Counted from the stretch's first letter, positions 369 through 48,681 are shown. The stretch: 49,047 bases of DNA from Klebsormidium nitens (GCA_000708835.1 DF237588.1:1-49047), one strand, 5' to 3'. Notes: generated by a model from the sequence alone, not told the origin. Translations and numbers: made by a program.

Positions 369-415
369 TCTTCAAATCATGATAGTAAGGTCCTTCTCTT
401 CCTTCCTTCTTGCTC

Positions 416-2523: not shown

Positions 2524-2826
2524 NNNNNNNNNNNNNNNNNNNNNNNNNNNNNNNNNNNNNNNNNNNNNNNNNNNNNNNNNNNNNNNNNNNNNNNNNNNNN
2601 NNNNNNNNNNNNNNNNNNNNNNNNNNNNNNNNNNNNNNNNNNNNNNNNNNNNNNNNNNNNNNNNNNNNNNNNNNNNNNNNNNNNNNNNNNNNNNNNNNNN
2701 NNNNNNNNNNNNNNNNNNNNNNNNNNNNNNNNNNNNNNNNNNNNNNNNNNNNNNNNNNNNNNNNNNNNNNNNNNNNNNNNNNNNNNNNNNNNNNNNNNNN
2801 NNNNNNNNNNNNNNNNNNNNNNNNNN
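2524..2826. other. assembly gap (N-run)
   Basis: 303 N. Confidence 1.
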
Positions 2827-5800
2827 GTCATCTTGAAGAGTAAGTTTAACACGTGGACGTTTCGAGTGCGCCGGATGGAACCTGCTCTGGGATTCCACGG
2901 TTCGATGACCACCCCTGTTCAACCTCGCCGGCTGCAACCGCGGAAAGATGTTCGATGACGTCAAAGTAATAGCTAAAGTTTAGCTGAAATTTAGTATCTA
3001 AATAGACCCTATCTATCGATCGCAACCGGGAAGCATGCCCCGAAAATGCTGTAGAATCTACCGTATCCTGTCGGGCGGGGCGATGCGGCCTTCGAGTAGG
3101 CTTCGACCCACGCAGTCCAACCCACCAATCAGCGTTGCGGAAATCAGGACACGCGTCAATCACTGAAGTAGGTACTGGCGGCGAGCGCCTCCTAGCAAAA
3201 GGCCCGCTCTAGGAATAGCAGATTAGGTTTGTTATGCGTTGGACAATGCATACAATACGGTCAGTGACATGCACGAAGCGATCGTTACAGTAATCATTCG
3301 ATGAATGAGTAAGTTCAGCGGGCGCAGCCTAGGCAAGCCAGTGTTTAAATGCAAGTAGCTAGTGCTAGGCTCTGTAGCATACTACGTACAGGACTTAAGC
3401 CCGGCGCCAAGCTTAAGCATGCATGATCCCCACGTACGCGCACGCTGTGACGGATTGGCCACAACCAGACATTACGACACTGACCGTGTTAGACATGCTT
3501 TGAAGCTCCTGCGCCCACGATGATGGCAATTTGTACGCCGGCCAATACGGCCGGTAGCTAGATCTTTGGCCGCGCACGCGATCGCAAGCACACATGGTAT
3601 CATATACCATGTGATTCGGGTATGCCGCCGCCGGAAAGCCCGACTCTGATCGAGGGAGCACCGCAGCGCGGCTTGCAAGCTTTGTCGGGTACCCAAAAAC
3701 GCATATGCAATCCGGCTCACCATACTCGGACGGGATTGCTGAATGTTGCAGGTTAATGATCACCGTCTTTTGAAAGTTGAGTCTATCTCATGCTAGTATC
3801 AAGTTCGTTGGTCCGGCAAATTTGCATGGCCGGTGACCAAAGGACGTACTTGTGCAAGTAATGAATGTAAAAGAAAACTGTCTGACAAGATTTCCTACAA
3901 TTCACCGAGTCAAAAAGTCACTTACATTTTTGAGTGTAATCGCTTTACTCAAACCATGACAACAACGTATCAACCGGCGATTAAGCCTGAAGGCCTTAAT
4001 GCCTGCCCGGTTTTCCTGATCTACGCTTGACCAGACTTGATGATCAAATTTTACTCAAAGCGCCTTGCGCTCCCAGACTTCCACATAAACCGGAATGCGC
4101 CTAATGACTGGTTGTCTTTGCATGCAGCTTACAGCCTAACACTGCAAGGATCAGAGAGGGCGCATTCCTACACAATACAGTGCGCGGACCTACCTTAGTG
4201 CACTCTTACGTACCTCAGCAACTGTAACCCTGCGTCCCTCACGTTAACGGTAACTACGTTGCTCAATGGCATGAATGACCTAACGCTGGCTTGCCTGGCT
4301 GCCGATGCACGACTTCCGTTTACATTGATAATGTTGTCTTTTGGGCCCGACGGCTGGTGTCGTGAAATGCATCGACAATAGTAACCGACAAGGAATGCTC
4401 AACACGTTTGCAAGCCACTGCTAAACTCTTTGGACAGCCTGTTTCCGGCTCTTCACAAGAATAATCGCGAAGAAACTGCTGCGATGGGGGACCTGAAGCA
4501 GAGAAATAAAGTTTCATGCTTTTGCTGGTTCAAGGTGGTCAAATCGTTGGGAGATCGCTCGTTCGGAATCAGGGGTACCTCCAAAAAAAGGGGGTCTAGG
4601 TTCTCTGGACTGTAATCCAGGCACTCGACCAGAGAGGAGACTCGTCACACCCGGAATGGTCGGTACAGAGTGGATGATTTGAACCAAGTCGCGAGAGACA
4701 AGGTTTGACAGAAAGAGAGGAGTTCTATCAGACCGACACTGAGGAGTAGGAAACCCGATCGAGGCTCGATCAAGCGCCTCCTCATACAGTCAAAACTCTC
4801 CTGGCTTTAGTCTTGTGTGGTAACGGCACGTACTTGGGACTCTTGAGACTATCCAAGCCACCTCACTTGCTTCAAAATCTTAAATTGCAGGTGCAAACTC
4901 TGCGGACGTTCAATTGTCGGCTCCTATGTTGAATTTGGGAGCTAGGCTTCCGGCCTAGAAAATGATGACGAGGCCTGTTCCCGAAGACAGATTCTCTTTA
5001 ACGCCTCCGCAGCCGTTTGAAGCCACGTCACTATTGCCTGGTCCCCAAACAAGTGGTGCCACACAGTTCGACGGACGCATACTGTATTCTGTGTCGCAAC
5101 TAGAAGAACAGGGAAAACTGCTTCTTGGGACAAAGTGTGAAGAACTTTGACAGGTTGAGATCCCTTCCAAGGAGCGCGCAGGAGTGCTGGAGGAGGCCTA
5201 CATTTCTCTTGAGCTTATTCAGACAAGACAAGCACAGCTTACCATCAGAGCTGGAGACAGACGTTCGTGATCTAGGGCCGCTCCCGGCCCCTCCGACAGG
5301 AACGGGCCTCTGCGAGCGAAACGCTTGGAAACGTGAAGGGGGGTCTCATGTTTGTTTGAAGCGAGGTTGACGATCAGAACACGGCCAAAGAAGGTGTACA
5401 TCAGGCACTACAGGCTCTGTCGAATGTACCGCATCTCTCGGTAGCGGTGCGGTGAGTCAGATTGGCTTCCGTAGCCCGAGACAACAACTGCTTCCTGGCT
5501 GATTATGGTGTTGCAGGGTGGGGTGCTGGGGTCGTTTGCAAAATGATACTGGATACACCTTCCAGCAGCTTTTGTCAGATCGATGTCAAAATGGACTGCG
5601 ACACACGTCCAAGCTGCTTAATTTGAAAGATGTTTACCGCCTTCAGAGCTAGGGAACTGGATTCCTTAACTGTTCGAACTGCGGCTGAACGGAGAAGGGC
5701 TCGTAACTGCTTTCGACAGGAGCGCGAAGAGCTTTGTTTGCTTATGCAGCTACCTTGACTCCTGGCAGAATGGTTCAAGCGCTGCTTAAGGGGCCCAAAA

Positions 5801-6175
5801 GTAGTTCTACGAATCCTAATTGTATGAGGTCGAACCTAACTCAGTGCCTCCAGGCGCAACAAAACAGTGCCGCGGCAGATGTTGGACGGTGACTGGCTGG
5901 AATCAAGTGATGCAACTCGGGAGAGTGTCTAACATCAGCAGAAAATTCTTTGCTGACCATATTCCAAAAGACTACAGAGGCCAGCCATGATGTGTCGACC
6001 AGACATGGGCTACAAGTTTCACTTTAAACATAATCTTAGCAACGACGTTTCGGTCTCCTGCAGCTTATGAGAATCTGAAAGCGGTCTGCCAGGAAGCGTG
6101 ACGCGAAATTGTCAGCCGGATACGTACCTGTGGCACATGATGCTCAGCCCCGCTTTCCTGCCACGTGTCAGGAGA

Positions 6176-9100
6176 TCAACCCGGAGCCGTCTTCAGATTC
6201 CGATCCGGTCTGCAGGGCAGGATCGCTCGCTCGGCGGTGGCCTCCTCGGGGACAAGGCCCCCGCTGCCTGCCTGCGGCGCTCCCTTACACTGGTCATCCT
6301 TCGCGGGCCCTGTTTCCTTCCCTGTTGCCTGCGGCAGAGCCCCGCTTGCAGGCTGGGCTGCTTGGTCGGCCGCTGCCGGGGGTGCCCCGGTAAGAAGAAG
6401 GCGGGGCAGTAAAGACGCGAATTCAGAAGCCTGCAAAAAAGAAAAGCGAAGCTCTAGCTCTGGTCCGCTGTGAAGACGTAGAGAGGCCTACATCCGGAAA
6501 GCTCCGTGTCACGACAGCGTTTGCTGACATGCAAACCAATCCTCCGGGATTCCGGCTTCGAGCTCAATCCTTTCAAACGACCTCAAAGATCCAAACAAGC
6601 ATTGCGAATCGGCGGATGAACGACTGCAAGGGCTGCACAAAACAGGGTGTGGAAGCGCCGTGAATTCTCCAGCACACCTAGGTGCACGGTCAGATCGGGA
6701 TGCTGTCGAGTGTTGATGCGTTCACCTCTTGCACCCAAACGGTTCCAGGTTAAGCGAAGGCACAGACGCTAATGATAACTGCGGGCGCTAAAAAGTACTT
6801 TGGATCGAGCTAACGCAAGCGTGCAGTCGTTCCTGGTGTCAACAAGAATTTGCAAGCGCTCTTGCATGGCCAGTTTCCCGGTCACCTTGTGTTGGCTTTC
6901 GCTGCTGAAAGCCGACGGTTCCAAGACCATCTCGGGAGTCAGTACCCCGGGGAAATCCAGAACCAGCTGGGAATAGGGGTCCGGCTCGCCGATCGCCTGA
7001 TGTGCCTGCGAAAAAAAGGTCACATGAGAACGCTGGGGCAAAATTGGATGCTCGACACGATTTGTATAAACGAGATCTACTCTGCTCCTTCTTCCGGGGT
7101 TGTTTTGAGACGTGACGACGAAACAGAGGAAGAATCTTTGTCATGCGCATGCGTTGGTGAAGTGCATCACGGGAACCACGAAAAAGTCGTTAAACAAGAT
7201 GAGTCATGAGATTGGACGTGGGCAAGAGGGTTTCGTCCCAGTGACAAAGCAGGGTTAGTCAGCACGGAGTCCCCAATGGATGTCTCCTTTGTCGGAACTG
7301 TAGTGAGCCGCCTCTCGTAGCGGACACCCAAAGGCTCTCGACCACTGACGAATGCTTCTAGTGACAGAGGACCGGTGCTGCAACTTGAAAACCTGTTTTC
7401 GCTCCTCGTGACAGCCGACCGTACTCTCTCAAACCCATTCCTTAAACATCCAACGCGCTGTAAGTAATGGCTTGTCTTTACGACCTTTGAGCAGATTTTC
7501 GTGAGATGCCAAAAGCTGGCCTCCGCGGAAGCCGGAAACCCTCTCAAGAAGAAGGACACGTCGAGCCATGCAAGCAACCTACCTCGGAGCGATCCTTCGG
7601 AAAGACGAGCAAGCAGACATTCTGCTCCGTCTGCACCGGATAGCAGGCCTCCTTAAAGCTGCCTTTTCCTCCGACTGCCCAACCCGAAAGCGCGCCCTTG
7701 TTCGACTTTGCTGTCGCTACCATTCCGGCGCCGCCGGTCTTCGCCCTGGTATGGAAGCTTCCCCGGGCCTTGATCGCGTCCGCGACCCTGTCCGACAGCG
7801 GCAGATCGTCGAGGTCCACCGAAGACCCGTCTTCGCCACCTGCGACCACGCCAGGGGTCTGGCTCGCATCCGCCGGCTCCGGTCCTCTAACCCCCGGCTG
7901 CTGTTCAGATGCCGTTTTCCTGCAATCGGGCAGTTTTTGGATCGGGGCAGCCGGCATTTCGTCCGGTTCCGGCGGGTTCTTGAGATTCCGAGCCCTGGCC
8001 CTTTGCGGCTTAGGGCCCTCCGTGCTTAGGGGTTCTGCCCGCTTGACTCGGGCCTTGGGCTTGGGGGTATCCTTCGATTCCTCCGGGGCCTTCTTCTTTG
8101 GAGGCCTCCCCCGCTTCCGCTTCGGGGCGGCCGTACTCGGTTCCACAATTGACGGCTGAATCTTGTCTCCCCCGCCTGACGTGGGTGCAGATTCGTCTGC
8201 AGGCTGAGGAGCGGCCAACTCCGACCCGGGCAGTGGAGTTCTGGGTTCGGACAAGCTTCTGGGGTCCGAGGTTCCGGCGGACTTCGGGGTGGGGGCGCTT
8301 TCGGTTGCCTTTTCGGGAGAGGGTTTGCTTTCCGGCGGCAGTTGCTGCTCAGGGCTTGACGTATCTCCCGGAGCCATTGATTCCGGGGCTTTGAGCTCCA
8401 TCTGAGGAATTGGCGCATCACTGTCGCAGATCTCCGCTATCTCGGGCGCCCCCGCTGGGCTTGCAGGCGCATCTGGACGGTTTCCAGACGCTTCTGCGGG
8501 GCTTTTAAACGCTTCTTGGGGGCGTTCGGACGCTTCTAGGGAGCGTCCAGACATTTCTGGAGGATTTTCGGACGCTTTGGCAGGGTCCGGACCGTCCGCA
8601 CACGTTGGCGCAGGCGCTGTCACCTCTGGGGTATATTTGTACCGAACCGGGACAGCTTCAAACCCCTGGACGGATTGGAGCGCTGCCGGACGCAGCTCAG
8701 TCAGCCTTGCCGGATCGACTGTTTCCCCTGCTGGTTCGACTGCAACCGCGGTTTTTTCCGACCCGGCCTTAACCCTGAGGAGACCCGTTGCCTGGCCGCC
8801 CGCTTGCACACGCTCAGTTGCAGGTTGCACAGCAGCATCCCCTTGCTTGGGGGGGCCGTCCCCAGAGGTGCCGCCCGACATTCTCGCCCCCCTGGAGGGG
8901 GTGTCCACTGTCGGCAGTCGGGGCTCCATCCGCTCCTCTCGGTCCTTGCTGTCACCCCCCTGAGTTGCCTTTCTACCGGTCCCGAAGCTTGGTGCCAGGC
9001 TTTCCTTATCTCCCCGCACCTTGGAAGGGTCACCAATGACCTTCCTGCTTTCTTGGGCTCGTTCACACCCCGTCCTTCCCTGGGGCACCTCACCCACCCC

Positions 9101-12100
9101 CCTCGCTTCTTTCGACCGCCCGCTCTCCCACCCCCTGGCCAGAATCTCCAGCCCGTTCTTCCAGCCGCGGCCGCGCTTCACGTCCTTCCCGATGTTCCTC
9201 CAGCGGATAGGGCGCAGCCGGGCCGGCAGATCCGTGCCGGGGAGGGGCCGCTTGTTACTGACGCTCGTGATTTCATCATCTTCCGCCGCATCTTCCTGCG
9301 TCTCGAACTGCCACTCAGTGATCCGGGGGATCACCATATCCTCCTTACCCAGCGCTGCAAGCTCCAACCGCTTATGAGGTTTGGTAGGGAGACTCCCGTT
9401 ATGGGGGGCGCGATCAAGTGGTGTCGGCTCGGGGGGGTTGGAAAGCTGGGCCCGTTTTGCAGGGGGTTCATCAGCTGCACACGAAAGTAGGTGCGCCTGG
9501 TCAACAACCTCACAACCAAATACATGATAAGCAATGCATGACAGCTGTTAGAGTGGAGTATCAGACCGGATAGAAAAGTCAGATTAAAAGGAAGACGCTG
9601 TGAATGGCTCACATGCTCAAAAGCCCAGGAGGACTGATTCGAGCTTGCAGTCGCCGACTAAGCAGATTCAGAAAGCTAACTACTTGTAGCTTTTTGCACC
9701 ATAGCACACCCCAGCATGGTGCCTGAGGTGATAGAAGGACTCTCGACAAAAGGATGAACCTCGACAGTCTGCAACTTGGAAGGTCCTCCAAGTTGATGAA
9801 TTGCGCACAAATCAGGTGAACATGCAGCTGATGGAGGGACGTGCTGCGAGATCAAGGCAAAGCAAATTTCCCTCATGGATCCAACACTGAGTGAGAATGC
9901 AACGGGCGGCAATACAGCAATGGGCCGATTCTGATAACGCGTGCTGCTTTGAAGTTCAACAACGGAAGTAACTTCTCATCATGTTTGCTATACATAAGAA
10001 GCCGTCCACACTCACACATCACTTATTCCCAGCAAAGCAAACGCATCATCCAAACATTCTCCTTGGCGTTGTTTGAGCTGTCAGAGCCTCCGCAATGTAC
10101 GACTGGCTGAATCGACAGCAACCGCAGCTAAAGGTGAGCAGAGGGAGCCCTCTCAGGGATGTTGCGATGCGACCAAACCGGCATGTGATCTGGATTGGAT
10201 TCGCCCAAGGTGCTTAAACCAAAAACCCTAATGCAAAGGTTTACGCGCTCTGCACCCTAAACCACCATAGACTAGGCCTACCTATTTCTCAGTCGCCTAT
10301 CTCAAGCGATATAGGAGTTGGAAAGTCGTCACAAGCACCAAAACCCTTTTCATAAAGGCGCTTGACACAACGATATCTCAGTGGACAAAAGAGGCCCAGG
10401 TCTTACCTCTTTCTGCCTGCCCCAAGTCCTTGCCACCCCCCGTCCCCCTCGCATCCGTCCCCCACTTCCGCTTCCCCTCCTGTCCCCTCCCAGCTTGTGC
10501 AATCAACCCCGCTTTCTCCACCTCTGCCCCCGGGCCCGAGGAAACACCACTTCCACTTTGTTTCTCCCTGGGCCCATCGTCCCATGCGCTGCGGTTGCCC
10601 TTGCCTACAGGAGGCCCCATTGCGGGCTCCACCAATCCAGGATCGACTAGGACTTTTGCCTTCTTCCGCGGAGGACTGACGCTCCGGGGTGTGGTTCTGA
10701 GAGGAGCGTCTTGCTTTTCCTTCTGCGGGGAAAGCGATTGGCGCGGTGCGTGCCGGCCCCTGCTGGGCGAGCTTGCAGTGCAGGCGGAGGGGCTGAGGCT
10801 TCGAGGAGGGGAAAGGAAGACATTCCTGTCTTGCTGGCAGTTGCAGCGGCTGTCCGAGCAGCGGGTCACACTGCGGCTGCAGAAAGATGGAGAAATGCCG
10901 GTGCGAAAAGGCTAGAAAGACTGGTATAGGCAAAGCACTGTAAGCAGACAAGAGCCCTAGTGCAGTTTGAGTCTACAGAGCGTAAATCTGGCGGATAATA
11001 CGCAATGATCCAAGTAAAACCCTACCGCTGTGAGTTTTAGGATCCCTGATTGGATACCCAAGCTAACACCCCAGATTAAACCCACTCGTCGCAAGACCCT
11101 CTTATTGCGCCGATACCTACTGAATCAATGAGACTTGCAGAGCTCTGCCAGCCAGCCAGGGAAGATGTTTAAAGGAATAACTTCTGAAGGGTAGTCTGAA
11201 TCATTAGAAGCTTGTTTCAAGGATGGAATGTGAGCTGGGGCCCAGACACCTTTCACCTGGGTGACTCAAAAACCCAAGTTTACATCTCAGAGCCTGAGAT
11301 TGCTTTAGTAGCTTTTTGGACGCCGTATTTCGTGGAAAGATAACAATTTGGCGAGCAAATGAGACACCCTGGGACAGGGCTCTTGATTTGAAAAGATTCT
11401 GCAGAAAAATCCGAAGCGAATGCACAAGTCATGTGTTCTTATGCTGAAGGTGCTGTCTTGGATGCCGCATCGGTTCCGGAAGCCCGAAGAGTGTGAATCA
11501 AAGCTCTGGCAAGTAAGTATTGAACATCCCCCGAGCAACAAAGGGACGGTAATTCCTAAGCTCGGACCTTTTGAGCATGTGCCGGGTGCACAAGGTGTTG
11601 CCTTCAGTATTCAAAAGATCGCTGTAATGCATTATGCAGATGATCAATTATGCTCGTTCTCTAATAGTAGATCCAGAAGCAGATGGGTAGCTCATGGTTT
11701 GAATGGGATCCCTTCCGAGAGTGTCCAAGAATGCTGCATCTCTACCATCAGAAGCCTCACAAACACACCGCTGATCTCTTCTTCAAAGAGGGCCTCAGGG
11801 AGCGGTCCCCCTGAAGTCACAGGGCGACTGTATAGCTTGCCCCTCTGCGCTTGTGTAGCCAGCATGCCCCAAGTGGCGGTGGCATTCCCAAGCCAGCATT
11901 CCCTGACCGGTGCTGACATTATGGGCTGCCCCGGTCGTCTGCCCTCTTTGAATCCATGCGCAATTGCCGAAACCAGCATCCTGATATTATGATATGTATC
12001 CAGATAGGTTGAAGCACCAAGCACCGTCTGAAGTCCTGCTCACCTCCTAGAGCGTCCCCTGCTCCCGCTCTGCCCCTTCCTTTTGCTGCCCGAAGCTTGC

Positions 12101-12834
12101 ATCTCTGCTGCGCAAACCAGCGCCTTGGCATTCTCAATATGTGCACCTTTGCCCTCAGGGGGACGCTCTTTCGCTCTGCCACCGGTTCCTTCGGCCGCAG
12201 GTACCTTCTCAGGGTTCCCTCCGCAAGCCTGTGCCTTTCCTTCCAAAGTGCCCCTGTCCCTTGCATTTGGCCTGTGCTCTGCTCGATTGGCCCCCCTCAG
12301 CTTTGTGCCCTTCGCCAGCCTGGTCGTATCCCTGTCCCTCCTCTGATCTCTGCCGTGGTCATCTCCCCTCGCCCTCCAAGCAGCAACCTTGGCACCCCGC
12401 TCGGCGCCACCCCGAGCCTCCCGCTTTACAGCAGTGTTATAGTAGCATACATTAGTATCATGCCCCGCCCTGCAACATATGGTGCAAAACCTTCTCGTGC
12501 CCTGGAAAGAGGGCCTCACATTCGTGACATGAGGTCCCCCAAACCGGCGTTCGTCGCTGCCCTTTGTCTCTACCAGAGGAAACTTTGCCTGAGCAACCCC
12601 TTGCCGCTGCTGCAGTCTCGCCCAGCGGACAACCATCCGTTCCCCGTACAGCACAAGGCCGTGCTCATGCGCTTGGTACGCATCCTGCGCGGCGCATTCC
12701 TCCGCAAAGTCCACAAATGCATAGCCCTCTTTGATACGGACCCAGTTCAGGGAACCAAAGGGTTGGAAGGCGCGCCGCAGCTGCTCTTCTCCGACTGCAG
12801 AGAGGTTGAATTTGCCGACGTACAGGGTCGTCAT
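6176..12834 (-). CDS. ~1175-aa SR/RSZ-like RNA-binding protein: RRM + CCHC zinc knuckle + RS/SP-rich and long disordered region + AT-hook (5 exons)
   Basis: Exons 12834-12044, 10876-10407, 9474-7583, 7005-6886, 6430-6176. All introns are GT-AG with matching phases (2,1,0,0); total 3528 nt. RRM LYVGKFN...GYAFVDF; knuckle CTICCRAGHDTNVC; AT-hook KRKRGRPPKKK near 8090-8125. Extra small exons in introns 1-2 cannot be excluded. Confidence 0.75.
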
Positions 12835-13408
12835 TGCGAAATTGCGGGGGGTGTCGAGGGATTCTGCTTGCAGCTTCGGCAACTCTCATCCAAATGGAAG
12901 GCCAGACTATTTGAAGGGAGTGGCAGCTTCGATCCTTTTGCATTGTAATCATTGACAAATGGGCGTTGCAATTGCCAAGCAAACAGAGATCAGACTAGAC
13001 ATTGAACAGGATGGAGGACCTGTTCGAGAGGTCCTTCGAGAGCCCTGAAGGTTGAGGAAACCAATGTACTTGAACAGGTTAGGTTGCTGGCTTGCCGCCA
13101 CCTTCCACCGCCATGACATTCCCTGAAGGAAGTTCAGCCACCATGGCAACATTTCCCATTTTGCAACTCGGATGATCTCCGCGTGTTCACAACTTCACTG
13201 TTTTCGGTTTTGAAACTGTGCATGCAATTCCTTATCGCCCGTCAGGGTTTTTCGCTCAGCCATTTTGCCGGGAGCCATCAGAATCGTTTCGAAATCGAAT
13301 CACGTGGCGGGGAGATATCGCTGATATACCCCGCCGCAGAGGGGTATATCAAAAAACTCTTGGCAGGCTCGACGGCGATGCAAGGTCTGGACTAAGCGAT
13401 AAGCGAGT

Positions 13409-27690: not shown

Positions 27691-28012
27691 AATGAAATCA
27701 GCTTGAGCTTGCACGCAGTCCTGCATGTTGCAGAGCCGTGGTCAGCACTGAAACCGGACAGAAGAAAGGTTTCAATTGCTCGTCAAGAAGCGCGCCGTCG
27801 ATGCAGCCTGGAGCAAAAGATTACTATCAACGCGCAGAACATTGCCCGTGTGGTACACTGGAAGGCCTGCGGACTGTCAGAGACCGATTGTCAAAGAGGC
27901 ACGTGATCCGCTTCTGGGCACGTCAAGAACGGAAACAGAACAGAGCGGAACGGAACTGCACCGGAAAGCTTATGAGGCCAGAACAGAAACGCCAGTAAGC
28001 AGAGTAAAATAC

Positions 28013-28560
28013 TGTGACGAAGTCGGTACACAGTTACTACACACGAATCGTCACACTATTCTCCCCTCCGGGGGAGTTCGCAGAACGAGAGAAGAAAAAT
28101 AATCGGATGATATCAGATCGTGGCTGGTCGACTTGCCCTCTCGAAGAAGGAGAAACGTCGATACACAATTCAGATGTAAAACAAGAAAACAAAAGTAGCG
28201 AAAGTATCAGAGGGTGAAAGACGCCAGAATGACGTCATAGCTGAGGTATTAGACTGCCAGCAAACTGCCGGATGGACAGTTTCAAAACTGTCGGAATGAC
28301 AGGATGGCAGTTCATTAGAACCTGATAACAAAAAGACAGGGTATCAGACAAAGAGCAAGCTACTTCTGTCGAAGAGACACTGTTTGCAGTCATCACAACC
28401 AGTTAACCGCCGACAGAAACGGATGGTATGGTCAGAATAGAATTTACAGCGATGTGGATCGGACAACGACCTATGTTACACTCTCACACCGAGAGACGAT
28501 GTGTCGTCATATCCGACAGAAGAGAATAGAGCAGATCAGTCGTCCGCGGATTAGTCGACC
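28013..28560 (-). mobile_element. LTR-retrotransposon-like 3' end (3'UTR, polypurine tract, LTR start TGTGAC), copy 1
   Basis: Minus strand GGAGGGGAGAATAG (28069-28056) directly followed by TGTGACGATTCGTGTGTA. Shares blocks with 36020-36440, including the perfect 17-mer AACGGATGGTATGGTCA (28418 / 36279). Confidence 0.55.
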
Positions 28561-29846: not shown

Positions 29847-30200
29847 CTAACCGCTCCCCCAACCAGTACTGCGGTCCTCCCAGCCAGAGGGAACAGGAGG
29901 TTCCTGCTCCTCGCCCACCGGCTCCTGCGGTGACTCCAGAAACAGAGCTGGGAACCTCTCCCTGTCAGTCTCCGTGTGCGCCCTGTGGAAGCCAGCCGTG
30001 TACCACGCTGACTGATGACCGTACAGATCTCTAGTGAGCCCAGGGAACCCCCACAGAGCACTCACTATGTCTTCACGCTGGTTCTCCCAGTACTGAGACC
30101 TCGCCTCCTCGCTGAAGTGCAGCTTGAGGTCATCAGCTAGGGCTTCCCGGATGAAAGCAAAGACACCCCTCAACAGGAAGGTGGAAGAGGGGATTTGCCA
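29847..30200 (-). pseudogene. C-terminal fragment of the 'ORF-A' family (paralog of 42471-43430)
   Basis: GVFAFIREALADDLKLHFSEEARSQYWENQREDIVSALWGFPGLTRDLYG aligns with GVFAFVREALADDLDLFFSAKAREEYWEEQRVGIVSPLWGFPWVTGDLYG. Both end in STGW. Confidence 0.85.
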
Positions 30201-30799
30201 GGCACACTGACAGCTCTGTAAGGGCGAATTAGCGAATTAGCGGATGCAATCCGCAGTGACGTCATTAGCGACATAGCGCGGGGAGCGACGGGTTAGTAGT
30301 CGCCGGAATTTGACATCAGCGGATGACACGTGATACTATCTCAGCGACCAGACACCATCACTCTCCGCTTAGTGGTCGCTAACGCGGATGCATCCGCAAA
30401 CGCCCGTAGGTTGAAGATTGATGAATGGGCGAAACTTTGACCGTTCGATTATACTTCAGCTGTATCATCGGAGCATCATCTTGATGATCCAGAGTTTTGA
30501 GTTCGGCGCGCTGTTCATGTTTTTTGCCGACGTGGTGTAATCGACGGTTCTGTTTTTTTCTTTTTGAGAGAATATTTCTGGCCACAAGCAGCTCGTTGTT
30601 GGAGTCTACTGACTGGCATACGCTAACTGGCAAATTCGTAGGCTATTATCGAATAGGATACAGGTAGAATGCGATAATACCTTTCCGGGGGGGGATATAA
30701 GCCATGTACCATCGGGGTGCCATCGCGCCCCCCGTCATCAAGTAATTAGAGTTGGACTCTGCCTATTACCCCCAAGTCGTTTGCAAATATTCAATCTAT

Positions 30800-36019: not shown

Positions 36020-36440
36020 TGTGACGTTCCACGCATGAATGCACACGAATTCGCATGGCATGGCACCACATAGCACCACATGGCATGGCATAAAGTTCAC
36101 AGGCATGAATACACACGAATTGTCACACTATCCTTCCCTCCGGGAGGAGTCGCATAACGAGAAAGATTAAAAGGAGTCCAGAAACATGAATAAGAAAGTA
36201 TGAGAGGTGCATGTCAGACCGCACATAAACGACTTCTGTCCGTCGGACGGAAGGGGCGGCTTATCATGACCCGAAAGGAACGGATGGTATGGTCATGCAG
36301 CATGCAACAGAACATGAAACAACAATAGCGAATTAGGCAACGAACTGCCACGAATCACACTCATTTGGGAGGGCCTTGAAGCGTCGTCGTATCCGCAGAA
36401 ACAAAAAATAGAAGCAGCGTCAGATCGACTTGTAGATCAG
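36020..36440 (-). mobile_element. LTR-retrotransposon-like 3' end (PPT + candidate 108-bp LTR TGTGAC...GTCACA), copy 2
   Basis: Minus strand GGAGGGAAGGATAG (36141-36128) then TGTGACAATTCGTGTGTA. 36020-36127 is bounded by the inverted TGTGAC/GTCACA and has an internal duplication GCATGAAT(G/A)CACACGAATT. Homologous to 28013-28560. Confidence 0.55.
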
Positions 36441-37489
36441 TGTGGATCAGACTAACGTCCTATGCTACTCTCGGTCGGAGCGGAGAGCGGAAGCGTCGTC
36501 ATATCCTGGCACGTACCCGAAGCCGAGTCAGAGGTAACGGATAAGGCAAGGAAGAGAGAGACAGCAGACAGAGTGGTCAGAAGAGTAAAGCCAGGAACGC
36601 GCCTTCGCGCCTTCGTAAAGGGTGGACAATCTTGCTCATCCTGGCAACTAATTACCCGTAACCCGACCACACTGTAGACTCTGCATCTGGACACCTCGTG
36701 GCAGTGATCATGCTGACTTTGTCTCTCATGATGTCAATTCGATAACAATTACAGAGACTGTTTTGGTGGCTGCAACATCCGCCTACTGTAGCTTCAATAT
36801 TGGCACCCACCCAACTAATCATCCACATGCTCTTCCGAATATCTCCGCCCCTTTCTCGTCTTCTCCAACAACAACGGATCGGTCGAGTAGTACAAGGACT
36901 CAGTGCATCTTTTCAGTGCCTGCAAGTTTGAGAAAGATGACTTTTATACGTCCTCAACTTGAGTGCAAGGTTGATCGCTCTAGAAAGAACAGGTTCAGGA
37001 CGAGAGCTTGCGAATCAAGATCAATTTCAAGGCTCGAGTGCCCTCGGTCAGCCATTTCCTCATTCGACTAATGACGTTAGCTGACGTCACATCAATGACG
37101 ACTGAACCGAATTCCGCGCCGCGCCTACTGTTGAGCTGCCCTGCAGCAAGTGACATCCATGACTTGTTGACGAAAGAACCAATTCGTTGAACAGTCGCCC
37201 ACGTCCAGAACGTCCTCAGCTCGATTAAAGAGACCCCCACTGAAGTTCAAAAAGCTCATGTCGAGCAGCCCGTCTTGCAGCATGAGACAAAGCATTCACA
37301 ATCTGAAATTCAGCATTGAACGCTCTAAGCAAGCAACTAAGGATCAAATGGGCTCTTCCTTAAGGCCAGAGGGAGAAAGCTCTCAACATTATTCCCACAA
37401 GCTCGTCAACCTGATAACAATACACTCCAGAACGGAAGAGTTGAAACGCAAATCGCTAAAAGACTGACAAGCTTTTTGATCACCGTGTC

Positions 37490-41764: not shown

Positions 41765-42447
41765 AAGACAAGGCTGGCATGCCAGGCACGTCAGGCACGT
41801 CAAGACACCCCTCCAGATAATTCTCAACCACAGGCAACCACTTCTGAATAGGGAGATCCTTCTCCCAACTCTCAAACGAAGGTGGAGGCTTGGGTTTGAT
41901 AGAGTCAGACTTGTTCACCTGCGCAGCTTGTTGTGCTTGGATTCAGACAGCTGCCGTGTCATCAACTCAAGATACCTGAGGTTAGTTTTCTTCAGAGCCT
42001 CATAACCACAGTTTGCTCAGCACTACCCTGGTCAAGCTCAAAAGCCTCTCTCTCATCTTTAGATAGAGCTGCCCAGCGGGCCAGAAACTGTTCCGTTGTC
42101 TTAGGAACAATCATCTCGTCAGACTCAGAATTTTGCTCACTAGCAACCGGTGCCCCACCTCGCAGGCGATCAGCCAAGGAGGTAACGTACACCTATCTGG
42201 AGCTAGTAAAAAGATCAGCAACAGAATCGGAAATGGAGGCAAAAGCAGAATGAGCAGAAGGTACGAAGGCAGCTGCAGATGCTGACAACGAGGACGAGAC
42301 AGGAACCGAATTGGGCCCTACAGTGAAGGCGTCCTGTACAGGTGGGGAAGAGTTATCGTCCCCAAGAGTAACTAGCTCTAGGGTCTTTACCCTATCTAAC
42401 AGAGAGCTAACATCAGTCAGAAAGTCGTGTCCTCTATTCCTGCTCAT
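41765..42447 (-). pseudogene. truncated retrotransposon gag-like ORF
   Basis: ATG 42447 (MSRNRGHDFLTDVSSLLDRV). In-frame TAG at 42195-93 with the reading frame continuing after it, further frameshifts, then KPKPPPSFESWEKDLPIQKWLPVVENYL (41897-41814), a typical gag 'P..F......WL..VE.Y' motif. Ends in a small duplication scar. No pol follows. Confidence 0.6.
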
Positions 42448-42470
42448 CTATATACACCAGACTACAGAAC

Positions 42471-43430
42471 CTAGTCCCAACCGGTAGAAGGCCCCCAACT
42501 ACTACTGGGACTAGGAGTCTCTGGTACCCGTGCCTCCGGCAGAGGAGGCTCGCACGCCTCCTTATCGCGGTGCGCTCTGAGGAACCCGGCACTCCTCCAA
42601 GCCACTTGACGACCGTAGAGGTCGCCGGTGACCCAAGGGAACCCCCACAGAGGACTAACTATCCCCACTCGCTGCTCCTCCCAGTACTCTTCCCTGGCCT
42701 TGGCACTGAAGAACAGATCAAGGTCATCGGCCAATGCTTCCCTGACAAAGGCAAAGACTCCCTTCCTGACAGAACTCTCCAGCGCCGAGACACACAGACT
42801 ATCGAGCTCCTTATCCCCACGTCCAAAGCACGCAGCTATGACGTCACAGATGGCCTGCGGTCCTAGGTGCTCTAACACCTTACCCTGCAGCTCTGGGGAA
42901 AGGATATACCGGAAGGAGGGGGAAACGCTAGGGAGGTATACCTCAGGATCAGATGGAGACGTAAGGGAAAGGGAGGGAAAATAGTCCTCTGTCTCCTGCT
43001 GAGTATACTCCCTCTCTACAGACCCGTCACTAAAAGTCTCTTGATAAGTGAAATAGTCAGAAGGATGAACCCTGAAGGTGAACTCAGAGAGCCAACCGAG
43101 ATCCAAGTCCGGGTCCAGGACATAGTCTCCCCGGGTGACCGTTTTACCTGAGACCTTTTGCAACACCAGCTGCAACGCCCTCTTAGTGAGAACACTAATC
43201 TTGTCCCGCAGCCGGCGCTTCAGCCACTCACGCAGATTGAACCTGAGCTCCTTATGCACAGGAAGACAAAGGATCCTCCTCACGTCTCTAATGAGGAGTC
43301 TCTCTGTCCTTGTGAAAAACCACAACACCTGCTCAGACGCAGACAACCCACTCAGGTTCTTGTACTCCTGGATACGCTGCTGAAAAATGACAGAGCCAAA
43401 AGCGAAATGAATCCCCTGTGTGCCTGCCAC
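42471..43430 (-). CDS. 'ORF-A': unknown ~300-aa protein immediately upstream of the gag-like ORF
   Basis: 319 open codons with no ATG at all (GTG start). Strong acceptor TCATTTTTCAG at 43381-80. Stop lies 23 nt before the gag ATG. Two paralogs in the window. Confidence 0.7.
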   Translation of the reverse strand: MAGTQGIHFAFGSVIFQQRIQEYKNLSGLSASEQVLWFFTRTERLLIRDVRRILCLPVHKELRFNLREWLKRRLRDKISVLTKRALQLVLQKVSGKTVTRGDYVLDPDLDLGWLSEFTFRVHPSDYFTYQETFSDGSVEREYTQQETEDYFPSLSLTSPSDPEVYLPSVSPSFRYILSPELQGKVLEHLGPQAICDVIAACFGRGDKELDSLCVSALESSVRKGVFAFVREALADDLDLFFSAKAREEYWEEQRVGIVSPLWGFPWVTGDLYGRQVAWRSAGFLRAHRDKEACEPPLPEARVPETPSPSSSWGPSTGWD

Positions 43431-43687: not shown

Positions 43688-43892
43688 CATTTCGGTCAAA
43701 CCTGCCACCTGGCCGCCTGACCCGAGTCCGATTTAATTGGAGCCGAATGCAAAACTTCGCCCGAACAGCAGAACTTGGACCTTGCGATGACCCACATGCC
43801 TCTCATCGAACAGCCCAAGTTCTTCGGTTCGACAAAAGTTCGGCGACTGCCTCAAACCGGATTCGGGTCGGGCGGCCAGGTTTGACCGAATG
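43688..43892. mobile_element. MITE-like element with ~40-bp imperfect TIRs
   Basis: CATTTCGGTCAAACCTG(CCACCTG)GCCGCCTGACCCGAGTCCG vs reverse complement of the right end CATTCGGTCAAACCTGGCCGCCCGACCCGAATCCG. No TSD seen. Confidence 0.7.
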
Positions 43893-45164
43893 TGCAGTAG
43901 GTCCTAACCCATGCGCTTGGCTGAAAGAAGCTCTGACTCAGGGGGACCATACCCCACTTGAAAGTTAGAACTCAGAGGGCCGAAAGTCGGAACCATCCGA
44001 TGAACCTTCTCTTCGATGGAACGGTTCCGATGTCCTTCTGGAGCGTCCCGAGCGCTGGGTAGACCTCCGGTTGGCCTGTAGATTGGGTCTAGTCTGGTTA
44101 TTAGGTAGTTTGAGCATGTTGTTTGGGCAATTGTGACTGGTTAACCCTCCTGAATAAGCGCAAAGTATAGGTCCTAAACCCCTTCCTGCCTCAACCCAAA
44201 ATTCAAGGGTTAAAACGAGACCCTTCGGAGGTTTGACTCACCAGTCTTCGGGTTGGGGCAATTAGAGGTTTAGCTGCTGGCATACAGTGGTTCAGGCAAA
44301 CCTACTTGCCTGGGGTGTTTGGTCCCCCTGGAATACGTTTCATAGTTTTCCAAGAATTTGGATTTCAAAAAAAAACAATCGTCATGAAAATCCGTAGATG
44401 AGAGCAATCGATCAACTCAAGGCTGAATCATCTTAAACCATCTTGAATCTGTATGAAAACCCCTCAAGACGTGCTGAAAAGGCACATCTTGGCATGGAGC
44501 TCAACCAACATTTGATAAGCTAGCTAGGTGGCTCTCTGATCCAGAATCTGCGACTTTGCTCAAGCTACGAGTTACTTACCATTGTTACATGGGTCGTCGT
44601 TCTTCTTCTTTGAATATTTTCGATCAACTACTTAATTTGTACAGTCCAATCTATGCAAATCTGTGAGAATGGATTTTACGTTTCAGTATCATACTGATAA
44701 GCTCGGATTAAATGGCTTCGACATCGTTGCCTTGAAAATGGTTCGTTCTTCTTTCAATCTAGACAACCTCATTGAAGTACTTGATATAGTGCAATCTATA
44801 TGTGACATTGGATTATTACGTTTTGGTATCATACTACTAAGCTCGGTTTAGTATCATGCACACGTTTAAGCCATGCGTCAGTAGCTCCACATGCGTGCCA
44901 AGGTGTATCTCTTGACTTTGTTAGTGACAATCACGCGATGTTATCCTACTCGCACAAGCTGTAGCTATGCATTGTACAGGTATACGCATCGGGAATGGCA
45001 CCGGGGCCACAGGTTAATGCTGCAATTTGTGCACAAATCCATATAGAAACATGGTAAAAATATCCTTGAGTCTTTCAAATCACGCTCAGCCGAATTCCGC
45101 ATTGAAGGCTCAGAGGAAGGCAAGACTGAAGAAAGGACTGGGTCCACCAACAGGCCAAACACCC

Positions 45165-45223
45165 CTGCCCACTAAGGAGCTAATATCTGTCGGAAAGTCT
45201 TGTCCCCTAGCCCTGCTACTCAT
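45165..45223 (-). pseudogene. second gag-like start remnant
   Basis: MSSRARGQDFPTDISSLVGR vs MSRNRGHDFLTDVSSLLDR at 42447. Shared upstream TGTAT(A/G)TAG|ATG. Confidence 0.6.
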
Positions 45224-45329
45224 CTACATACAGATTTGTACATACCTGCCCAGGAACTAGCCGCTAATCCCAACCAGAACTAGGCCCAGCCCAGCATCTA
45301 CAGCAGCGGACTGGGTACCGGTTGCAGTG

Positions 45330-46010
45330 CTACAGGGGAATGACTGGCGAGGGGAATGCCCGCAGCTTCGTACTTGAACACTTCCAGTAGACACGGCTGT
45401 CCACCTCCTGGACCCGACGCAGCCGGTCCAGTGCCATTGCCCGGTCCACCACCTTCAAAACCTCCTCCTTGAGCACCTCTTGGAGAGCCTCCTTGCAGAG
45501 CTCGCAGAACTCCTTGTTGATCCGCCCGCCTATCAGCTCGCACAGCGTCTGTGCACTGCACTTCTTGAGCACCTCAAATCTGAGGGGCTCGTTTAACCGC
45601 TGGAACTGGGCGGGGTCTAAGCTGGGGGAAGGAGGAGAGAGCTGGTCGCCATCTTCTACAAAGAGCTGGTAGTGGAAGGACTCGACCTTCCAGCTGGCAT
45701 CCTCCTCTCGCTGGCTCTCAGCGACCACTCCCCACAAGGAATAACCCTGGCTACATGGAGGGTAGAAGAACTGCCCCAGGAAGTTCAAACGAAAATCAGA
45801 CCGCATATACGAACCAATGTTGTCACAGCGGGTACGAGACAAGGCCAATGCCACTTCTGTTACGTACTTGACACGCTCATCAGCACGCTCCCGGATGACC
45901 CTGCTGCAAACCGCATCAACCTTCTTGCTAATACGGCGCTGGAGAAGCTTTCTAATCTCCCTGGTCCGATAGCCCCCCTTGAGGACTAAGTACAGCACCT
46001 TCTCGTCCAT
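45330..46010 (-). CDS. diverged 'ORF-A' paralog (226 aa from ATG 46010)
   Basis: EKVLYLV..REIRKLL..GSYMRSDFRLNFLGQF..LNEPLRFEVLKKCSAQTLCELI..YWK..RAFP align by eye with EQVLWFF..RDVRRIL..GDYVLDPDLDLGWLSEF..LSPELQGKVLEHLGPQAICDVI..YWE..WGFP. Acceptor GCGCTGCAG just before the ATG. Confidence 0.65.
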   Translation of the reverse strand: MDEKVLYLVLKGGYRTREIRKLLQRRISKKVDAVCSRVIRERADERVKYVTEVALALSRTRCDNIGSYMRSDFRLNFLGQFFYPPCSQGYSLWGVVAESQREEDASWKVESFHYQLFVEDGDQLSPPSPSLDPAQFQRLNEPLRFEVLKKCSAQTLCELIGGRINKEFCELCKEALQEVLKEEVLKVVDRAMALDRLRRVQEVDSRVYWKCSSTKLRAFPSPVIPL

Positions 46011-46657
46011 GCACTGCAGCGCAAAGCGACAGAAGCAAAAGTGAAAGAGGTTCACCTCTGATAACGTATTCTGCTAAGCTTTGTAAGGAGTTGAGCGTGC
46101 GCAAGTATAGACAAGGGCATGCTGAAAAGCTTGTCAAACTGGCCTTTATCACTTCCCTGGCATCATCACTAGCTTCACAAGAGGGTTGGCACGAGTCGAA
46201 TTATCATCCTGGTGTTGCTCGATGAAAGGCCAGATGCAACGTAGATAAAATTAACCAAACTCAACGAATACAGCAAGAGGAAGGGGCCAAAAATCTGCTG
46301 CAAATGACGAGAAGGGAACTGAAAGAGACAAGTGGGCTACCAAGGGCAGCAATAATGGAACAAATGCAGTGGGTTTTAAGCAAACAAACCTGTAATGGCT
46401 GCCAGAAACAGCTGTCATGCCGTAGTTTGAGGGCTGTCCTCATTACTCCTTTTGGTAAGCAGAGGGTATTTGGAGGGATAACGTCAGCATGGCGTAAGTG
46501 CCTATTCCAGGCAAAATGTCAACGAAAGAAAGGAGCGTCTTTTAGAGAATCTCTTGAAGGGGGAAGACCCCAAGGTTCAAAAGGGCGAGGTTAACAGACT
46601 CTGAAAAACTCACCAGTCGCATTTCGTCTGCCAAGGTTCGATCGGCCACAGCCTTGG

Positions 46658-47503
46658 CTAACGACACCCGACCAGCACTCCACTCCATTCAACCTCTGGG
46701 CTGGTCGGAAGTGCGCGCCCGTCTGCAGTAGACCAGATGTAAGAAACAAAGCGGTCTCCCTTGCCCGACTTCCTGTTCAAGCAGACCCCTCTATCTGCTT
46801 CAAAAAGATAACAATCTCCCCTGAATGTAAGCAAATCCGTCTTTGGAAAGGTGAAGCTAAGTTGAGAGCTGGCCTCATTGCCTTCCAGACAGGCTAAGCT
46901 TTCACCACTTCCCGATTGCACGACCAGCGGCTGAAAAGGATCCATATGTAGGCAAAGGGACTCATGGGGACCTAAACCGCAACCTCGGCCAAGGTCAGCC
47001 CCTTCTGCCGGATTCTTGCGAATGCATCCCACCCTCTCAGGAGGCGGCAAAGCTGTAAGTGACCAGCCAACCCTTTTGCGCAAATCATAGGAGGCCCGCG
47101 CAATAGGACATATCTTTTCTCTCTTACTCAGTAACTCAATGCGCGGACCATCAAGGGCGAAAGTGGGGGTGAAATCTGTGAGACCCATGACCCTTCCGGG
47201 AATGCGCTCCCGCTCAGGCGGACCATACGGCAGCAGGTGTATATTCAAAGTGGACCTGTCCTCGACCAGAATACCCTCTGCTGCAATTATCCTACACTCA
47301 TTGGAGGAGCAGATCAGGAACAAACTTTCCATTGGCTGGGTGGTCAGGCAGTCCCCAGCGGTCTGCTCTTTTACCCACCTATACCAGGATTTGCAGACAA
47401 GCGCCATGCCCCTCGGAGTGTTGCCATCATGGAAGCACTGCCACCACCTCCTGGGCACTCTGCTCAAGATCTGATGGAGGACTTCAGGTGGGAGGAACTC
47501 CAT
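46658..47503 (-). CDS. intronless F-box protein (281 aa) with an unknown C-terminal domain
   Basis: MEFLPPEVLHQILSRV...MALVCKSWYRWV is an F-box motif at the N-terminus. Uninterrupted frame. Confidence 0.75.
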   Translation of the reverse strand: MEFLPPEVLHQILSRVPRRWWQCFHDGNTPRGMALVCKSWYRWVKEQTAGDCLTTQPMESLFLICSSNECRIIAAEGILVEDRSTLNIHLLPYGPPERERIPGRVMGLTDFTPTFALDGPRIELLSKREKICPIARASYDLRKRVGWSLTALPPPERVGCIRKNPAEGADLGRGCGLGPHESLCLHMDPFQPLVVQSGSGESLACLEGNEASSQLSFTFPKTDLLTFRGDCYLFEADRGVCLNRKSGKGDRFVSYIWSTADGRALPTSPEVEWSGVLVGCR

Positions 47504-47545
47504 TGCCAAAGCGCTGGGTAGGTGACCTGGTGGCAGCACACCTCT

Positions 47546-47552: not shown

Positions 47553-47921
47553 GGAGAACTTCAAGAAGATGTTCATTGGAAGGTACGCCCTCGTCAACCT
47601 GACCTAACCCTAATTCAAGGAATTGCGATCAACCATCAGCCGTATTCTCCCGACGATCCCCCGCGCAGCGACTGGACGAGACGCCCACAGGCAAATCTGC
47701 CAAAAGCTCGACCCTACCTATATAGTATAATACTGTCAGGGCTGTTACCAAGAAGGGCGTTTGACTCTGAGGGTGTGAGCCTGCATTTCTTTGCGTCCTG
47801 AAGCTTGAAATTGAATGCAGCACAGGCAAGAAGATTAGGATCTCCGGCAGCAGTATTGTTCACATGCTGGTTCATACTTGCGTGGAGTTGGAAATCGCCC
47901 GTGAAGCCTCTGCGGCACGCG

Positions 47922-48681
47922 ATGGAACCAAGGCCTCAAGCATCTTGCGGCAGAGGCTCCCAGGTTGAAATCTCACCACTGGGGTTTCCGCTCGATAGCA
48001 CATTGCCAGTGGAGGCCGCTCACATGTCTCTGGTATCCGGCGCGATTGGTGGTTGGGAAGAAGATGAGTACATGCGCAGAAGCATTGCAAAGTTGGCGGG
48101 AGAAGTCTCCAAGCTACGAAATGAGCTAAGTCAAAAAAATGTTGCCCTGGAGGCGGCTCACAAGAAATGTATCGAGGTTGACACAGAGCGCAAACAGCTG
48201 CTGTGCCTCTATTCCACAAGGTGCGGTCAGCTTAACGTATGTAGCGACGAGCTTGCCAAGGTGGTCAAGGAATCTGCAGCTTCAGAAGGGCAACTGAAGA
48301 AGACAGCGAAGCAACTGGAGGAAAAGAAGGGGCAACTGAAGGAGTCTCAGGTTTCTCTGGAAAAGGCCTAGGGTCTTTTGAGGGCCAATGGACAGTCAGC
48401 TGGTCATCCGGATCAAGGAGCTGAGCGATGAGGTCGAACGGAAAGGGGAGCAACTGAAGGAGTCCCAGAAGCTTCTGGAAGAGAGCCAGAGAGTGGATGT
48501 AGCGCGCACAGTGGAAAGAGAGAAGGAAGCTCCAGAGAGTGGCAACGAGGAACAGCTGTTGTTCGCAGTTGAGAAAGAAAAAGAGTTGTGCAGATCCCTG
48601 CAAGCCTTGGAAGAGAAGTTGAAGAGGGTGGAGCAGGAGTCTGAGTTAGCGGCTGGGGATCTAGCAAAAGCTCAACTACAG
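47922..48681 (+). pseudogene. coiled-coil protein gene with an internal stop/frameshift; probably continues via a GC-AG intron
   Basis: Heptad-rich frames 47805-48371 and 48388-48756 separated by TAG 48369 and a frame change. Internal duplication GCAACTGAAGGAGTC (48332, 48450). Donor CAG|GCAAGT at 48681. Confidence 0.55.

Follow-up and report, generated by a model that had tools for sequence, protein, structure and literature searches.

ORF-A, the first gene of a chromovirus family in Klebsormidium-like algae

Is a long open reading frame which contains no methionine, and which ends a few nucleotides before a decayed gag-like sequence, a gene at all, and if so, to whom does it belong? The frame in question, called ORF-A here, was noticed in a scaffold from Klebsormidium nitens, a charophyte green alga; the whole scaffold (49,047 nt) constitutes the window analysed in this work. 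LTR retrotransposons seldom carry additional genes, and the majority of such genes have no assigned function; Klebsormidium serves as a model for the algae in the ancestry of land plants. The explanation which accounts best for all the data, and which we regard as likely when taken as a whole, is that ORF-A is the first cistron of a chromovirus, that the window holds a dead copy of it, that its product is a helical protein under selection, that it behaves as a cassette, and that it has a host-directed role and a relation to gag translation which we infer below.

The copy of ORF-A in the window

ORF-A occupies positions 42471 to 43430 of the minus strand and belongs to what we call the alpha type. 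It consists, as described in the original prediction, of 319 sense codons, none of them coding for methionine, and a TAG stop codon (42471-42473). It corresponds to exon 2 of the public gene model KFL_006390070, whose protein (P0001) is its best protein match and is 100% identical to the ORF; for the spliced protein, the public record P0001 was used as recorded. Comparison of the window ORF-A with Pfam gave no match.

The stop codon is separated from the ATG of the following frame (42445-42447) by a 23-nt spacer (42448-42470, minus strand), conserved in the alignment of copies and exactly as long as originally noted. The following frame had been taken for gag-like, and it is homologous to the gag of an intact relative. 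It runs for 84 codons from the ATG to a premature stop at 42193-42195 (feature 42193-42447, minus strand), and further remnants cover 41799-42192 of the same strand. Residues 4-170 of the relative's gag align with positions 42441-42001 (E 4e-38) and residues 218-256, in another frame, with 41915-41799; residues 171-217 are missing at the frame break, and the gene is truncated at about residue 256 of about 490. ORF-A has thus remained open while gag has decayed through an in-frame stop, a frame break and truncation, just as the first reading of the sequence had it.

The missing methionine had been interpreted as the trait of a spliced gene, with ORF-A entered through a strong splice acceptor. 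When the sequences 5´ of ORF-A were aligned for 12 copies, a primarily different answer emerged. In the window copy, homology within the ORF-A family begins at the codon ATC at 43371-43373 (minus strand), which stands in place of the ancestral start codon, and the frame lacks methionine because this ATG has mutated to ATC. A partly deleted remnant of a tRNA-iMet PBS and a conserved leader lie immediately upstream (43376-43420, minus strand; 90% identical to positions 1080-1120 of L007). The leader of the window copy ends with TTTTTCAG followed by CAG. This sequence does look like a splice acceptor and is used as one by the public model, exon 2 of which begins at 43379, but it is the conserved leader of the element: a pyrimidine-CAG leader is kept in every copy of the family, immediately 5´ of the ORF-A ATG. 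The public annotation rescues ORF-A through a predicted upstream exon of 14 codons (44242-44283, minus strand), which begins with ATG and ends at the donor CTG/GTGAGT.

We conclude that the window copy is a dead remnant of a retroelement on the minus strand, since its PBS is damaged, its start codon reads ATC, its gag is broken and truncated, and pol is absent. When the window was searched, no LTR pair was found for this copy, nor was a matching 5´ LTR recognised, and no tblastn match to pol was obtained anywhere in it, even at E 50; the combination of LTR pair, intact PBS, gag and pol that marks an intact chromovirus is not present in this copy. The annotated genes KFL_006390070 and KFL_012940015 are retroelement-derived.

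Further pieces of the family are scattered over the window, three ORF-A copies lying on one strand within 16 kb. Both paralogues of ORF-A proposed at the outset (45330-46010 and 29847-30200) proved real, with boundaries at 45267-46064 and 29859-30302, respectively, on the minus strand. The former is of a second, beta type, 2 kb from the alpha copy described above; it has an ATG at 46010, a PBS/leader remnant at its 5´ end and a remnant of the gag start (residues 1-20) at 45164-45223 (minus strand), and its protein is 25% identical to the alpha copy and 59% identical to ORF-A of the intact element L013. The latter is a 5´-truncated fragment of alpha type (residues 184-318), showing 45% amino acid identity to the window ORF-A (E 1e-25) and 90% nucleotide identity to L008. 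An element 3´ UTR with polypurine tract and the first 19 nt of an LTR is located at 36108-36582, on the ORF-A strand (minus), and a second fragment of the family, comprising 3´ UTR and LTR sequence, at 27884-28437 (minus strand). Between 41799 and the piece at 36108-36582, neither gag nor pol was found; the 5.2 kb that separate the gag remnant from the 3´ UTR piece were considered as a decayed pol, a reading rejected because no tblastn match appeared even at E 50. ORF-A with its gag remnant and the 36108-36582 piece may represent one rearranged element or two fragments. An F-box ORF adjoins these sequences at 46658-47539.

Intact relatives and the identity of the element

Four intact relatives found outside the K. 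nitens assembly, L001, L013, L014 and L015 (the last three from three assemblies other than that of L001), share the order LTR, tRNA-iMet PBS, ORF-A, gag, pol. They show directly what had been suspected from the window alone, namely an undescribed accessory gene of a retroelement situated 5´ of gag. L001 is a complete young LTR retrotransposon of 8.3 kb. Its LTRs (about 500-1033 and 8220-8791) are 96-100% identical, the PBS TGGTATCAGAG, of tRNA-iMet type, is found at 1034, and a polypurine tract precedes 8220. ORF-A of L001 (1086-1985) begins with a proper ATG and codes for 299 aa; in intact elements, this ATG lies about 50 nt 3´ of the tRNA-iMet PBS. The gag gene (2049-3527, 492 aa) encodes a CCHC knuckle and scores 22.1 bits with PF03732, and the L013 gag passes the curated gathering score of this profile (24.3 vs 24.1 bits), in agreement with the gag identity that had been ascribed to the downstream ORF. 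The pol gene (3884-7729, 1281 aa) comprises protease, RT, RNase H, integrase, SH3 and chromodomain (Pfam PF13975, PF00078, PF17917, PF17921/PF00665, PF24626, and PF00385 at residues 1206-1259), the chromodomain being recognised with E 3e-17.

Paired LTRs with PBS and polypurine tract, a gag with CCHC knuckle and the domain order PR-RT-RH-INT-chromodomain together identify the element as a chromovirus, an assignment made by domain content (chromodomain integrase) rather than by clade phylogeny. The original prediction had left gypsy and DIRS elements to be distinguished by means of the downstream gag and pol, and the answer is gypsy. A DIRS element was rejected because pol carries Integrase_H2C2 and rve, i.e. 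a DDE integrase, not a tyrosine recombinase, and the Ogre/Tat lineage was rejected because a chromodomain is present in the integrase. ORF-A is thus shown to open a series of three genes (ORF-A, gag, pol) in a Ty3/gypsy chromovirus family of Klebsormidium-like algae.

The association of ORF-A with gag was followed in a census covering 15 loci. Apart from the four intact elements, where both gag and pol follow, ORF-A precedes gag or a remnant of the gag start in the alpha and beta copies of the window and in L002/L003, L004, L006 and L007. L009 (L009/L010) is an LTR-bounded element devoid of pol, with an internal region common to L005 and L011 (L011/L012); in all three, an ORF of 180-330 aa with a weak CCHC knuckle is located about 1.7 kb downstream of ORF-A. 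Within the 15 loci, the gag start is absent only from L008 and from the window fragment 29859-30302. Most copies therefore have a gag, its remnant or a CCHC ORF downstream, and the coupling on which the original prediction was built is not peculiar to the window. Genes flanking L002 and L006 are 70-80% identical at the nucleotide level to those of this K. nitens scaffold; as the flanking genes are shared, at least these two loci come from relatives of Klebsormidium.

The junction of the two genes is tight in most copies, the distance from ORF-A stop to gag ATG being 23-27 nt; it amounts to 63 nt in L001, and in L014 the genes overlap. In L001, L013 and the window copy, a TAG in the gag frame is found immediately ahead of the ATG of gag, and the phase of the spacer is not constant (+2 for the window copy, +1 for L015). 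Synthesis of an ORF-A-gag fusion via ribosomal frameshifting was therefore rejected as a general mechanism, both on account of this TAG and because length and phase of the spacer vary. L014 stands alone in having a gag without ATG which overlaps ORF-A, in the +1 frame; it represents either an exception or a defective copy.

The ORF-A protein, its constraint and its exchange

A word-based protein search detected only eight relatives, 48-71% identical to the window ORF-A. A profile search of all 1.84 billion cluster representatives, of every length, gave 29 matches of 60-322 aa, all of them unnamed or hypothetical, and no fusion, longer relative or host progenitor of ORF-A was found among these representatives. 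A scan of JGI metagenomes with the ORF-A query A2 yielded no relatives.

Determination of dN/dS among copies and modelling of the protein structure had both been put forward as checks of the original prediction. Pairwise dN/dS values (10 pairs; eight relatives compared) range from 0.17 to 0.35, and most indels are in-frame; the ORF-A family is under purifying selection. The AF2 model, computed from a 39-sequence alignment, is a confident one (pLDDT 84.6, pTM 0.81) and depicts an all-helical globule whose last about 17 residues are disordered (tail pLDDT below 50). Known folds offered no counterpart: Foldseek found no match in PDB with either ORF-A model, nor any in BFVD, the best Z-score of VIA-align against 48,161 chains was 4.5, with nothing usable among the hits, and a look-alike search of the ESM Atlas likewise returned nothing usable. 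Descent of ORF-A from a duplicated piece of gag was rejected (hhalign probability 0.1%). Together with the selection data, the models show ORF-A to be a real, selected protein of about 300 aa, predicted to be all-helical and without detectable relatives or known fold.

The C-terminal tails deserve separate mention. Of the 909 residues which they comprise, 61 (6.7%) are tryptophans, found for instance within TGWD, SGWG and SAWD, and a terminal [ST]GW[GDE] motif is found in most ORF-A subfamilies. Being enriched in tryptophan, disordered and provided with small, polar or acidic neighbours of tryptophan, the tails have the features of GW/WG sequences. The young copy L001 has been deprived of its GW tail by a frameshift, which raises the possibility that the tail is dispensable; conservation of this stretch might also operate at the RNA level.

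Comparison of intact elements with each other revealed a striking discrepancy between ORF-A and the rest. L001 and L013 are 86% identical in the LTR-leader region and 91% in gag-pol at the nucleotide level (97% at the amino acid level in pol), yet no alignment is possible over the stretch that begins 10 nt 5´ of the ORF-A ATG and ends 9 nt 5´ of the gag ATG, and their ORF-A proteins share 26% identity. Between L015 and L001, identity is 94% in pol, 84% in gag and 41% in ORF-A. Put generally, ORF-A is only 26-40% identical between elements whose pol is 94-97% identical, and gag retains 83-84% identity between elements differing by 60-75% in ORF-A, the breakpoints of the swap coinciding exactly with the leader on one side and the start of gag on the other. 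In these alignments, ORF-A behaves as an exchangeable cassette. Recombination between lineages at the conserved flanks would be the simplest account of ORF-A divergence, and it is favoured because dN/dS within types is ordinary.

Two other readings of the window copy concern the nature of the frame itself. According to one of them, ORF-A of the window has become a domesticated host gene, a new first exon (44283-44242) having been spliced onto the old leader after death of the element. L006 belongs to another Klebsormidium-like genome, and its collinearity with the window extends from 43367 to 34198 and takes in two flanking ORFs; the ORF-A copies of the two loci are 80% identical, with two in-frame indels. 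Their dS is 0.56 and dN/dS 0.32, close company for the two flanking host ORFs (dS 0.50-0.51, dN/dS 0.24-0.30), and gag has decayed via different deletions at the two loci. These data fit an old shared insertion in which ORF-A would have been kept under constraint. L002 likewise has an intact ORF-A, although its PBS and gag start are dead and it has no gag-pol, and the public model has both a consensus donor and a consensus acceptor. On the other hand, the window copy has lost its ATG, L006 bears a 1-nt frameshift near codon 31, and exon 1 is itself a prediction. Values of dN/dS below 1 between transposon copies may date from selection on the active element, and the 29 codons of gag start common to both loci have a low dN/dS as well (0.12). 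Moreover, the region is a graveyard of elements, with three ORF-A copies in 16 kb of one strand, where independent insertions are plausible. We consider domestication doubtful on this balance. Far less credible still is the other reading, which takes ORF-A for an ORF arisen by chance or an artefact of annotation, without protein product. The window copy indeed has no start codon, and the public model requires a predicted exon of 14 codons; nevertheless, homologues 48-71% identical possess proper ATGs, the position of ORF-A is conserved in four intact elements, and the dN/dS range and confident AF2 model given above are those of a protein. For the ORF-A family, the chance-ORF reading is refuted.

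Translation, function and comparison with known systems

Returning to ORF-A as the first cistron of the chromovirus, one has to ask how gag is translated behind it. The element RNA would effectively be tricistronic, the ORF-A AUG being the first one after the PBS, and gag would be initiated independently of ORF-A. We propose, tentatively, that this RNA also yields gag, ribosomes either reinitiating once they have crossed the short conserved spacer or bypassing the ORF-A AUG through leaky scanning. Judging from the alignments, the short conserved spacer suggests termination-reinitiation, and leaky scanning is suggested by paucity of AUG together with the pyrimidine at -3 of the ORF-A AUG (12/12 copies); the gag AUG has a pyrimidine at -3 as well. 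Internal methionine makes up 0.12% of ORF-A vs 1.3% of gag-pol, and ATG in any frame occurs 2-10 times per kb in ORF-A vs 11-16 times per kb in gag-pol. A strict form of leaky scanning was not adopted, as 4-8 out-of-frame ATGs are kept inside ORF-A of the intact L001, L013 and L015. A spliced RNA from which ORF-A is removed is a possibility for a third route to gag.

As for the function of the protein, cassette exchange between near-identical elements is typical of host-facing genes. ORF-A might be an accessory factor interacting with the host, its GW tail acting as an Argonaute hook which blunts RNA silencing of the element. We put this forward by analogy, because cassette turnover and a GW-type tail fit such proteins, and a counter-silencing factor of this kind, possibly Argonaute-binding, is our best guess, though conceivable rather than probable. 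The loss of the tail in L001 and a fold that offers no functional clue weaken the proposal. About equally likely is a structural or cis-acting role in replication, in which ORF-A would accompany Gag as a matrix-like protein or an RNA chaperone, in analogy to LINE-1 ORF1p. Such a role is in keeping with the place of ORF-A as the first cistron adjoining gag in all intact elements, with retention of ORF-A and the CCHC ORF by the pol-less derivatives L005, L009 and L011, and with the Arg/Lys-rich N-terminal helices of the protein. It is difficult to reconcile with the extent of ORF-A divergence, unexpected for a core replication protein when gag and pol of the same elements are so well preserved, with the lack of similarity to gag or to any capsid or nucleoprotein fold, and with the fact that other chromoviruses manage without ORF-A.

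Less likely than either is the role of a ubiquitin-system adaptor, comparable to polerovirus P0, an F-box protein which binds SKP1. It derives from the conserved segment LPxELQxxVL...GPQxIC, which would function as an F-box (SKP1-binding) or as a ubiquitin-binding helix-turn-helix of UBM type; in the AF2 model, two helices joined by an LP turn occupy this segment. The loose F-box likeness of the central segment, remarked on in the original prediction, does reappear in Pfam on this motif, with F-box-like at E 0.0016 in P0026 (residues 140-170) and F-box at E 0.031 in P0029; yet UBM is matched about as weakly, at E 0.03-0.05 in three members, and the best PDB profile match of the same segment is the Pol iota UBM (E 0.37), so that the two readings compete. 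All these scores stay below the gathering thresholds (at best 18.6 bits vs 24.3 for F-box, in P0026, and 13.5 bits vs 23.3 for UBM), 34 of the 39 members have no match (F-box being seen in 2/39 and UBM in 3/39), and no F-box protein emerged from the searches for similar folds. Homology of ORF-A to the neighbouring F-box ORF was rejected (hhalign probability 0.4%). We judge the adaptor role improbable. Equally improbable is the most far-reaching version of the counter-silencing proposal, in which a chromovirus lineage of streptophyte algae would encode, 5´ of gag, an orphan-fold GW-hook protein opposing silencing and shuffled as a cassette between lineages in an arms race, one K. nitens copy being kept as a host gene after death of the element.

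No published description of ORF-A, or of an extra 5´ gene in a Klebsormidium chromovirus, was found in a literature search on Klebsormidium LTR elements, on extra ORFs 5´ of gag and on the gene identifier. Extra ORFs in LTR retrotransposons as such are already known; what is new here is a chromovirus with an orphan-fold, cassette-like first cistron. The nearest precedent is provided by the Ogre/Tat elements of plants, giant Ty3/gypsy elements outside the chromoviruses, which carry an extra ORF1 5´ of gag. The likeness consists in an extra ORF, without assigned function, between the 5´ LTR/PBS and gag. The Klebsormidium element, however, is a chromovirus of 8.3 kb, not a giant non-chromovirus, and ORF-A has no sequence relatives outside its own small family. 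With the chromoviruses of plants and algae, the element shares LTRs, a PBS of tRNA-iMet type, a CCHC gag and a pol of PR-RT-RH-INT-chromodomain order, but a survey of their clades (Chlamyvir, Tcn1, Galadriel, Reina, Tekay and CRM) mentions no extra 5´ ORF for them (PMC6317226).

In terms of genetic organization, ORF-A and gag resemble the two non-overlapping ORFs of dicistronic LINE RNAs (LINE-1 ORF1/ORF2, SART1), where the second ORF is translated by termination-reinitiation: there is one RNA, a short conserved spacer and a downstream ORF with an AUG of its own. LINEs are nevertheless a different class of elements, and the phase of the spacer varies among ORF-A copies. Rice tungro bacilliform virus translates its ORFs I-III by leaky scanning through an AUG-poor region, and ORF-A, with its weak start context and depletion of AUG, is similar in this respect; the depletion is only partial, though, as the out-of-frame AUGs of intact copies testify. 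The tight ORF-A/gag junction offers a natural eukaryotic polycistronic RNA for the study of reinitiation or leaky scanning.

Viral silencing suppressors are the remaining parallel. P38 of TCV carries GW/WG Argonaute hooks, as does P1 of SPMMV (PMC2904775). ORF-A has in common with these accessory proteins of parasites a few tryptophans in Gly/Ser/Asp/Glu contexts within a disordered region; it differs from them in showing no similarity of sequence or fold, and the young L001 does without the tail. Four intact elements, a confident but unmatched predicted fold, selection and exchange of modules make ORF-A a tractable object, one which could reveal how retroelements coped with silencing in the time before land plants.

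Leader and ORF-A/gag junction

A small inverted repeat, GGTGAA..TTCACC, stands immediately 3' of the tRNA-iMet primer-binding site (PBS) in L001 (L001:1045-1060), an intact element of the Ty3/gypsy chromovirus family that carries ORF-A 5' of its gag. The same position is occupied in L007, L008 and L015, the L007 version reading GGTGA..TCGCC, and the repeat could form a conserved hairpin in the leader. The end of the PBS (AG|GTGA) is similar to a splice donor.

L014, which diverges most among the elements, lacks an ATG in its gag frame (L014:1043-1100). In the +1 frame, gag reaches back into the end of ORF-A and is open over the 37 nt that precede the ORF-A stop. Either this copy is defective or it is a variant with a +1 frameshift.

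ORF-A in pol-less elements and at L004

Elements from JGI samples 3300060284/5 (L009:1918-11526, also L005, L010, L011 and L012) have kept ORF-A together with an ORF of 180-330 aa containing a weak CCHC knuckle, while pol is absent. The ends of L009 are LTR-like repeats, mutually 93-98% identical. These pol-less elements look like a non-autonomous family holding on to the accessory gene ORF-A. Within the L005 element, about 10 tandem repeats of 31 nt form an array (L005:5113-5429). A separate gypsy element lies 5' of the L011 ORF-A copy (L011:2404-7034); its pol displays a faint DNA-methylase match and, in the integrase region, a PHD finger.

At the K. nitens locus L004 (DF238243.1), LTR-like sequence is present as two tandem copies of about 1.09 kb each, 95-98% identical (L004:1563-3640), directly 5' of the PBS and ORF-A of gene model KFL_012940015. 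This ORF-A contains an internal stop, past which the public model splices.

Probable host genes and repeats in the window

Two ORFs of the window, one with an F-box (46658-47539, minus strand; PF00646, E 2e-4) and one coding for a coiled coil (47805-48371, plus strand), are conserved with L002, where an alpha-type ORF-A lies near them in opposite orientation. Between the window and L002 their dN/dS is about 0.4, and both appear to be host genes beside element remnants. Elsewhere in the window, an ORF of LINE type (410-2836, plus strand) encodes an endonuclease domain (PF03372) and a reverse transcriptase domain (PF00078), and another ORF (12040-12882, minus strand) combines an RRM with a weak zinc knuckle of CCHC type.

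The predicted intron of KFL_006390070, the public model of the window ORF-A, includes a palindromic stretch of 175 nt (43707-43881). This palindrome is MITE-like and has short matches at L006 (5386-5516) and L002 (9893-9927).
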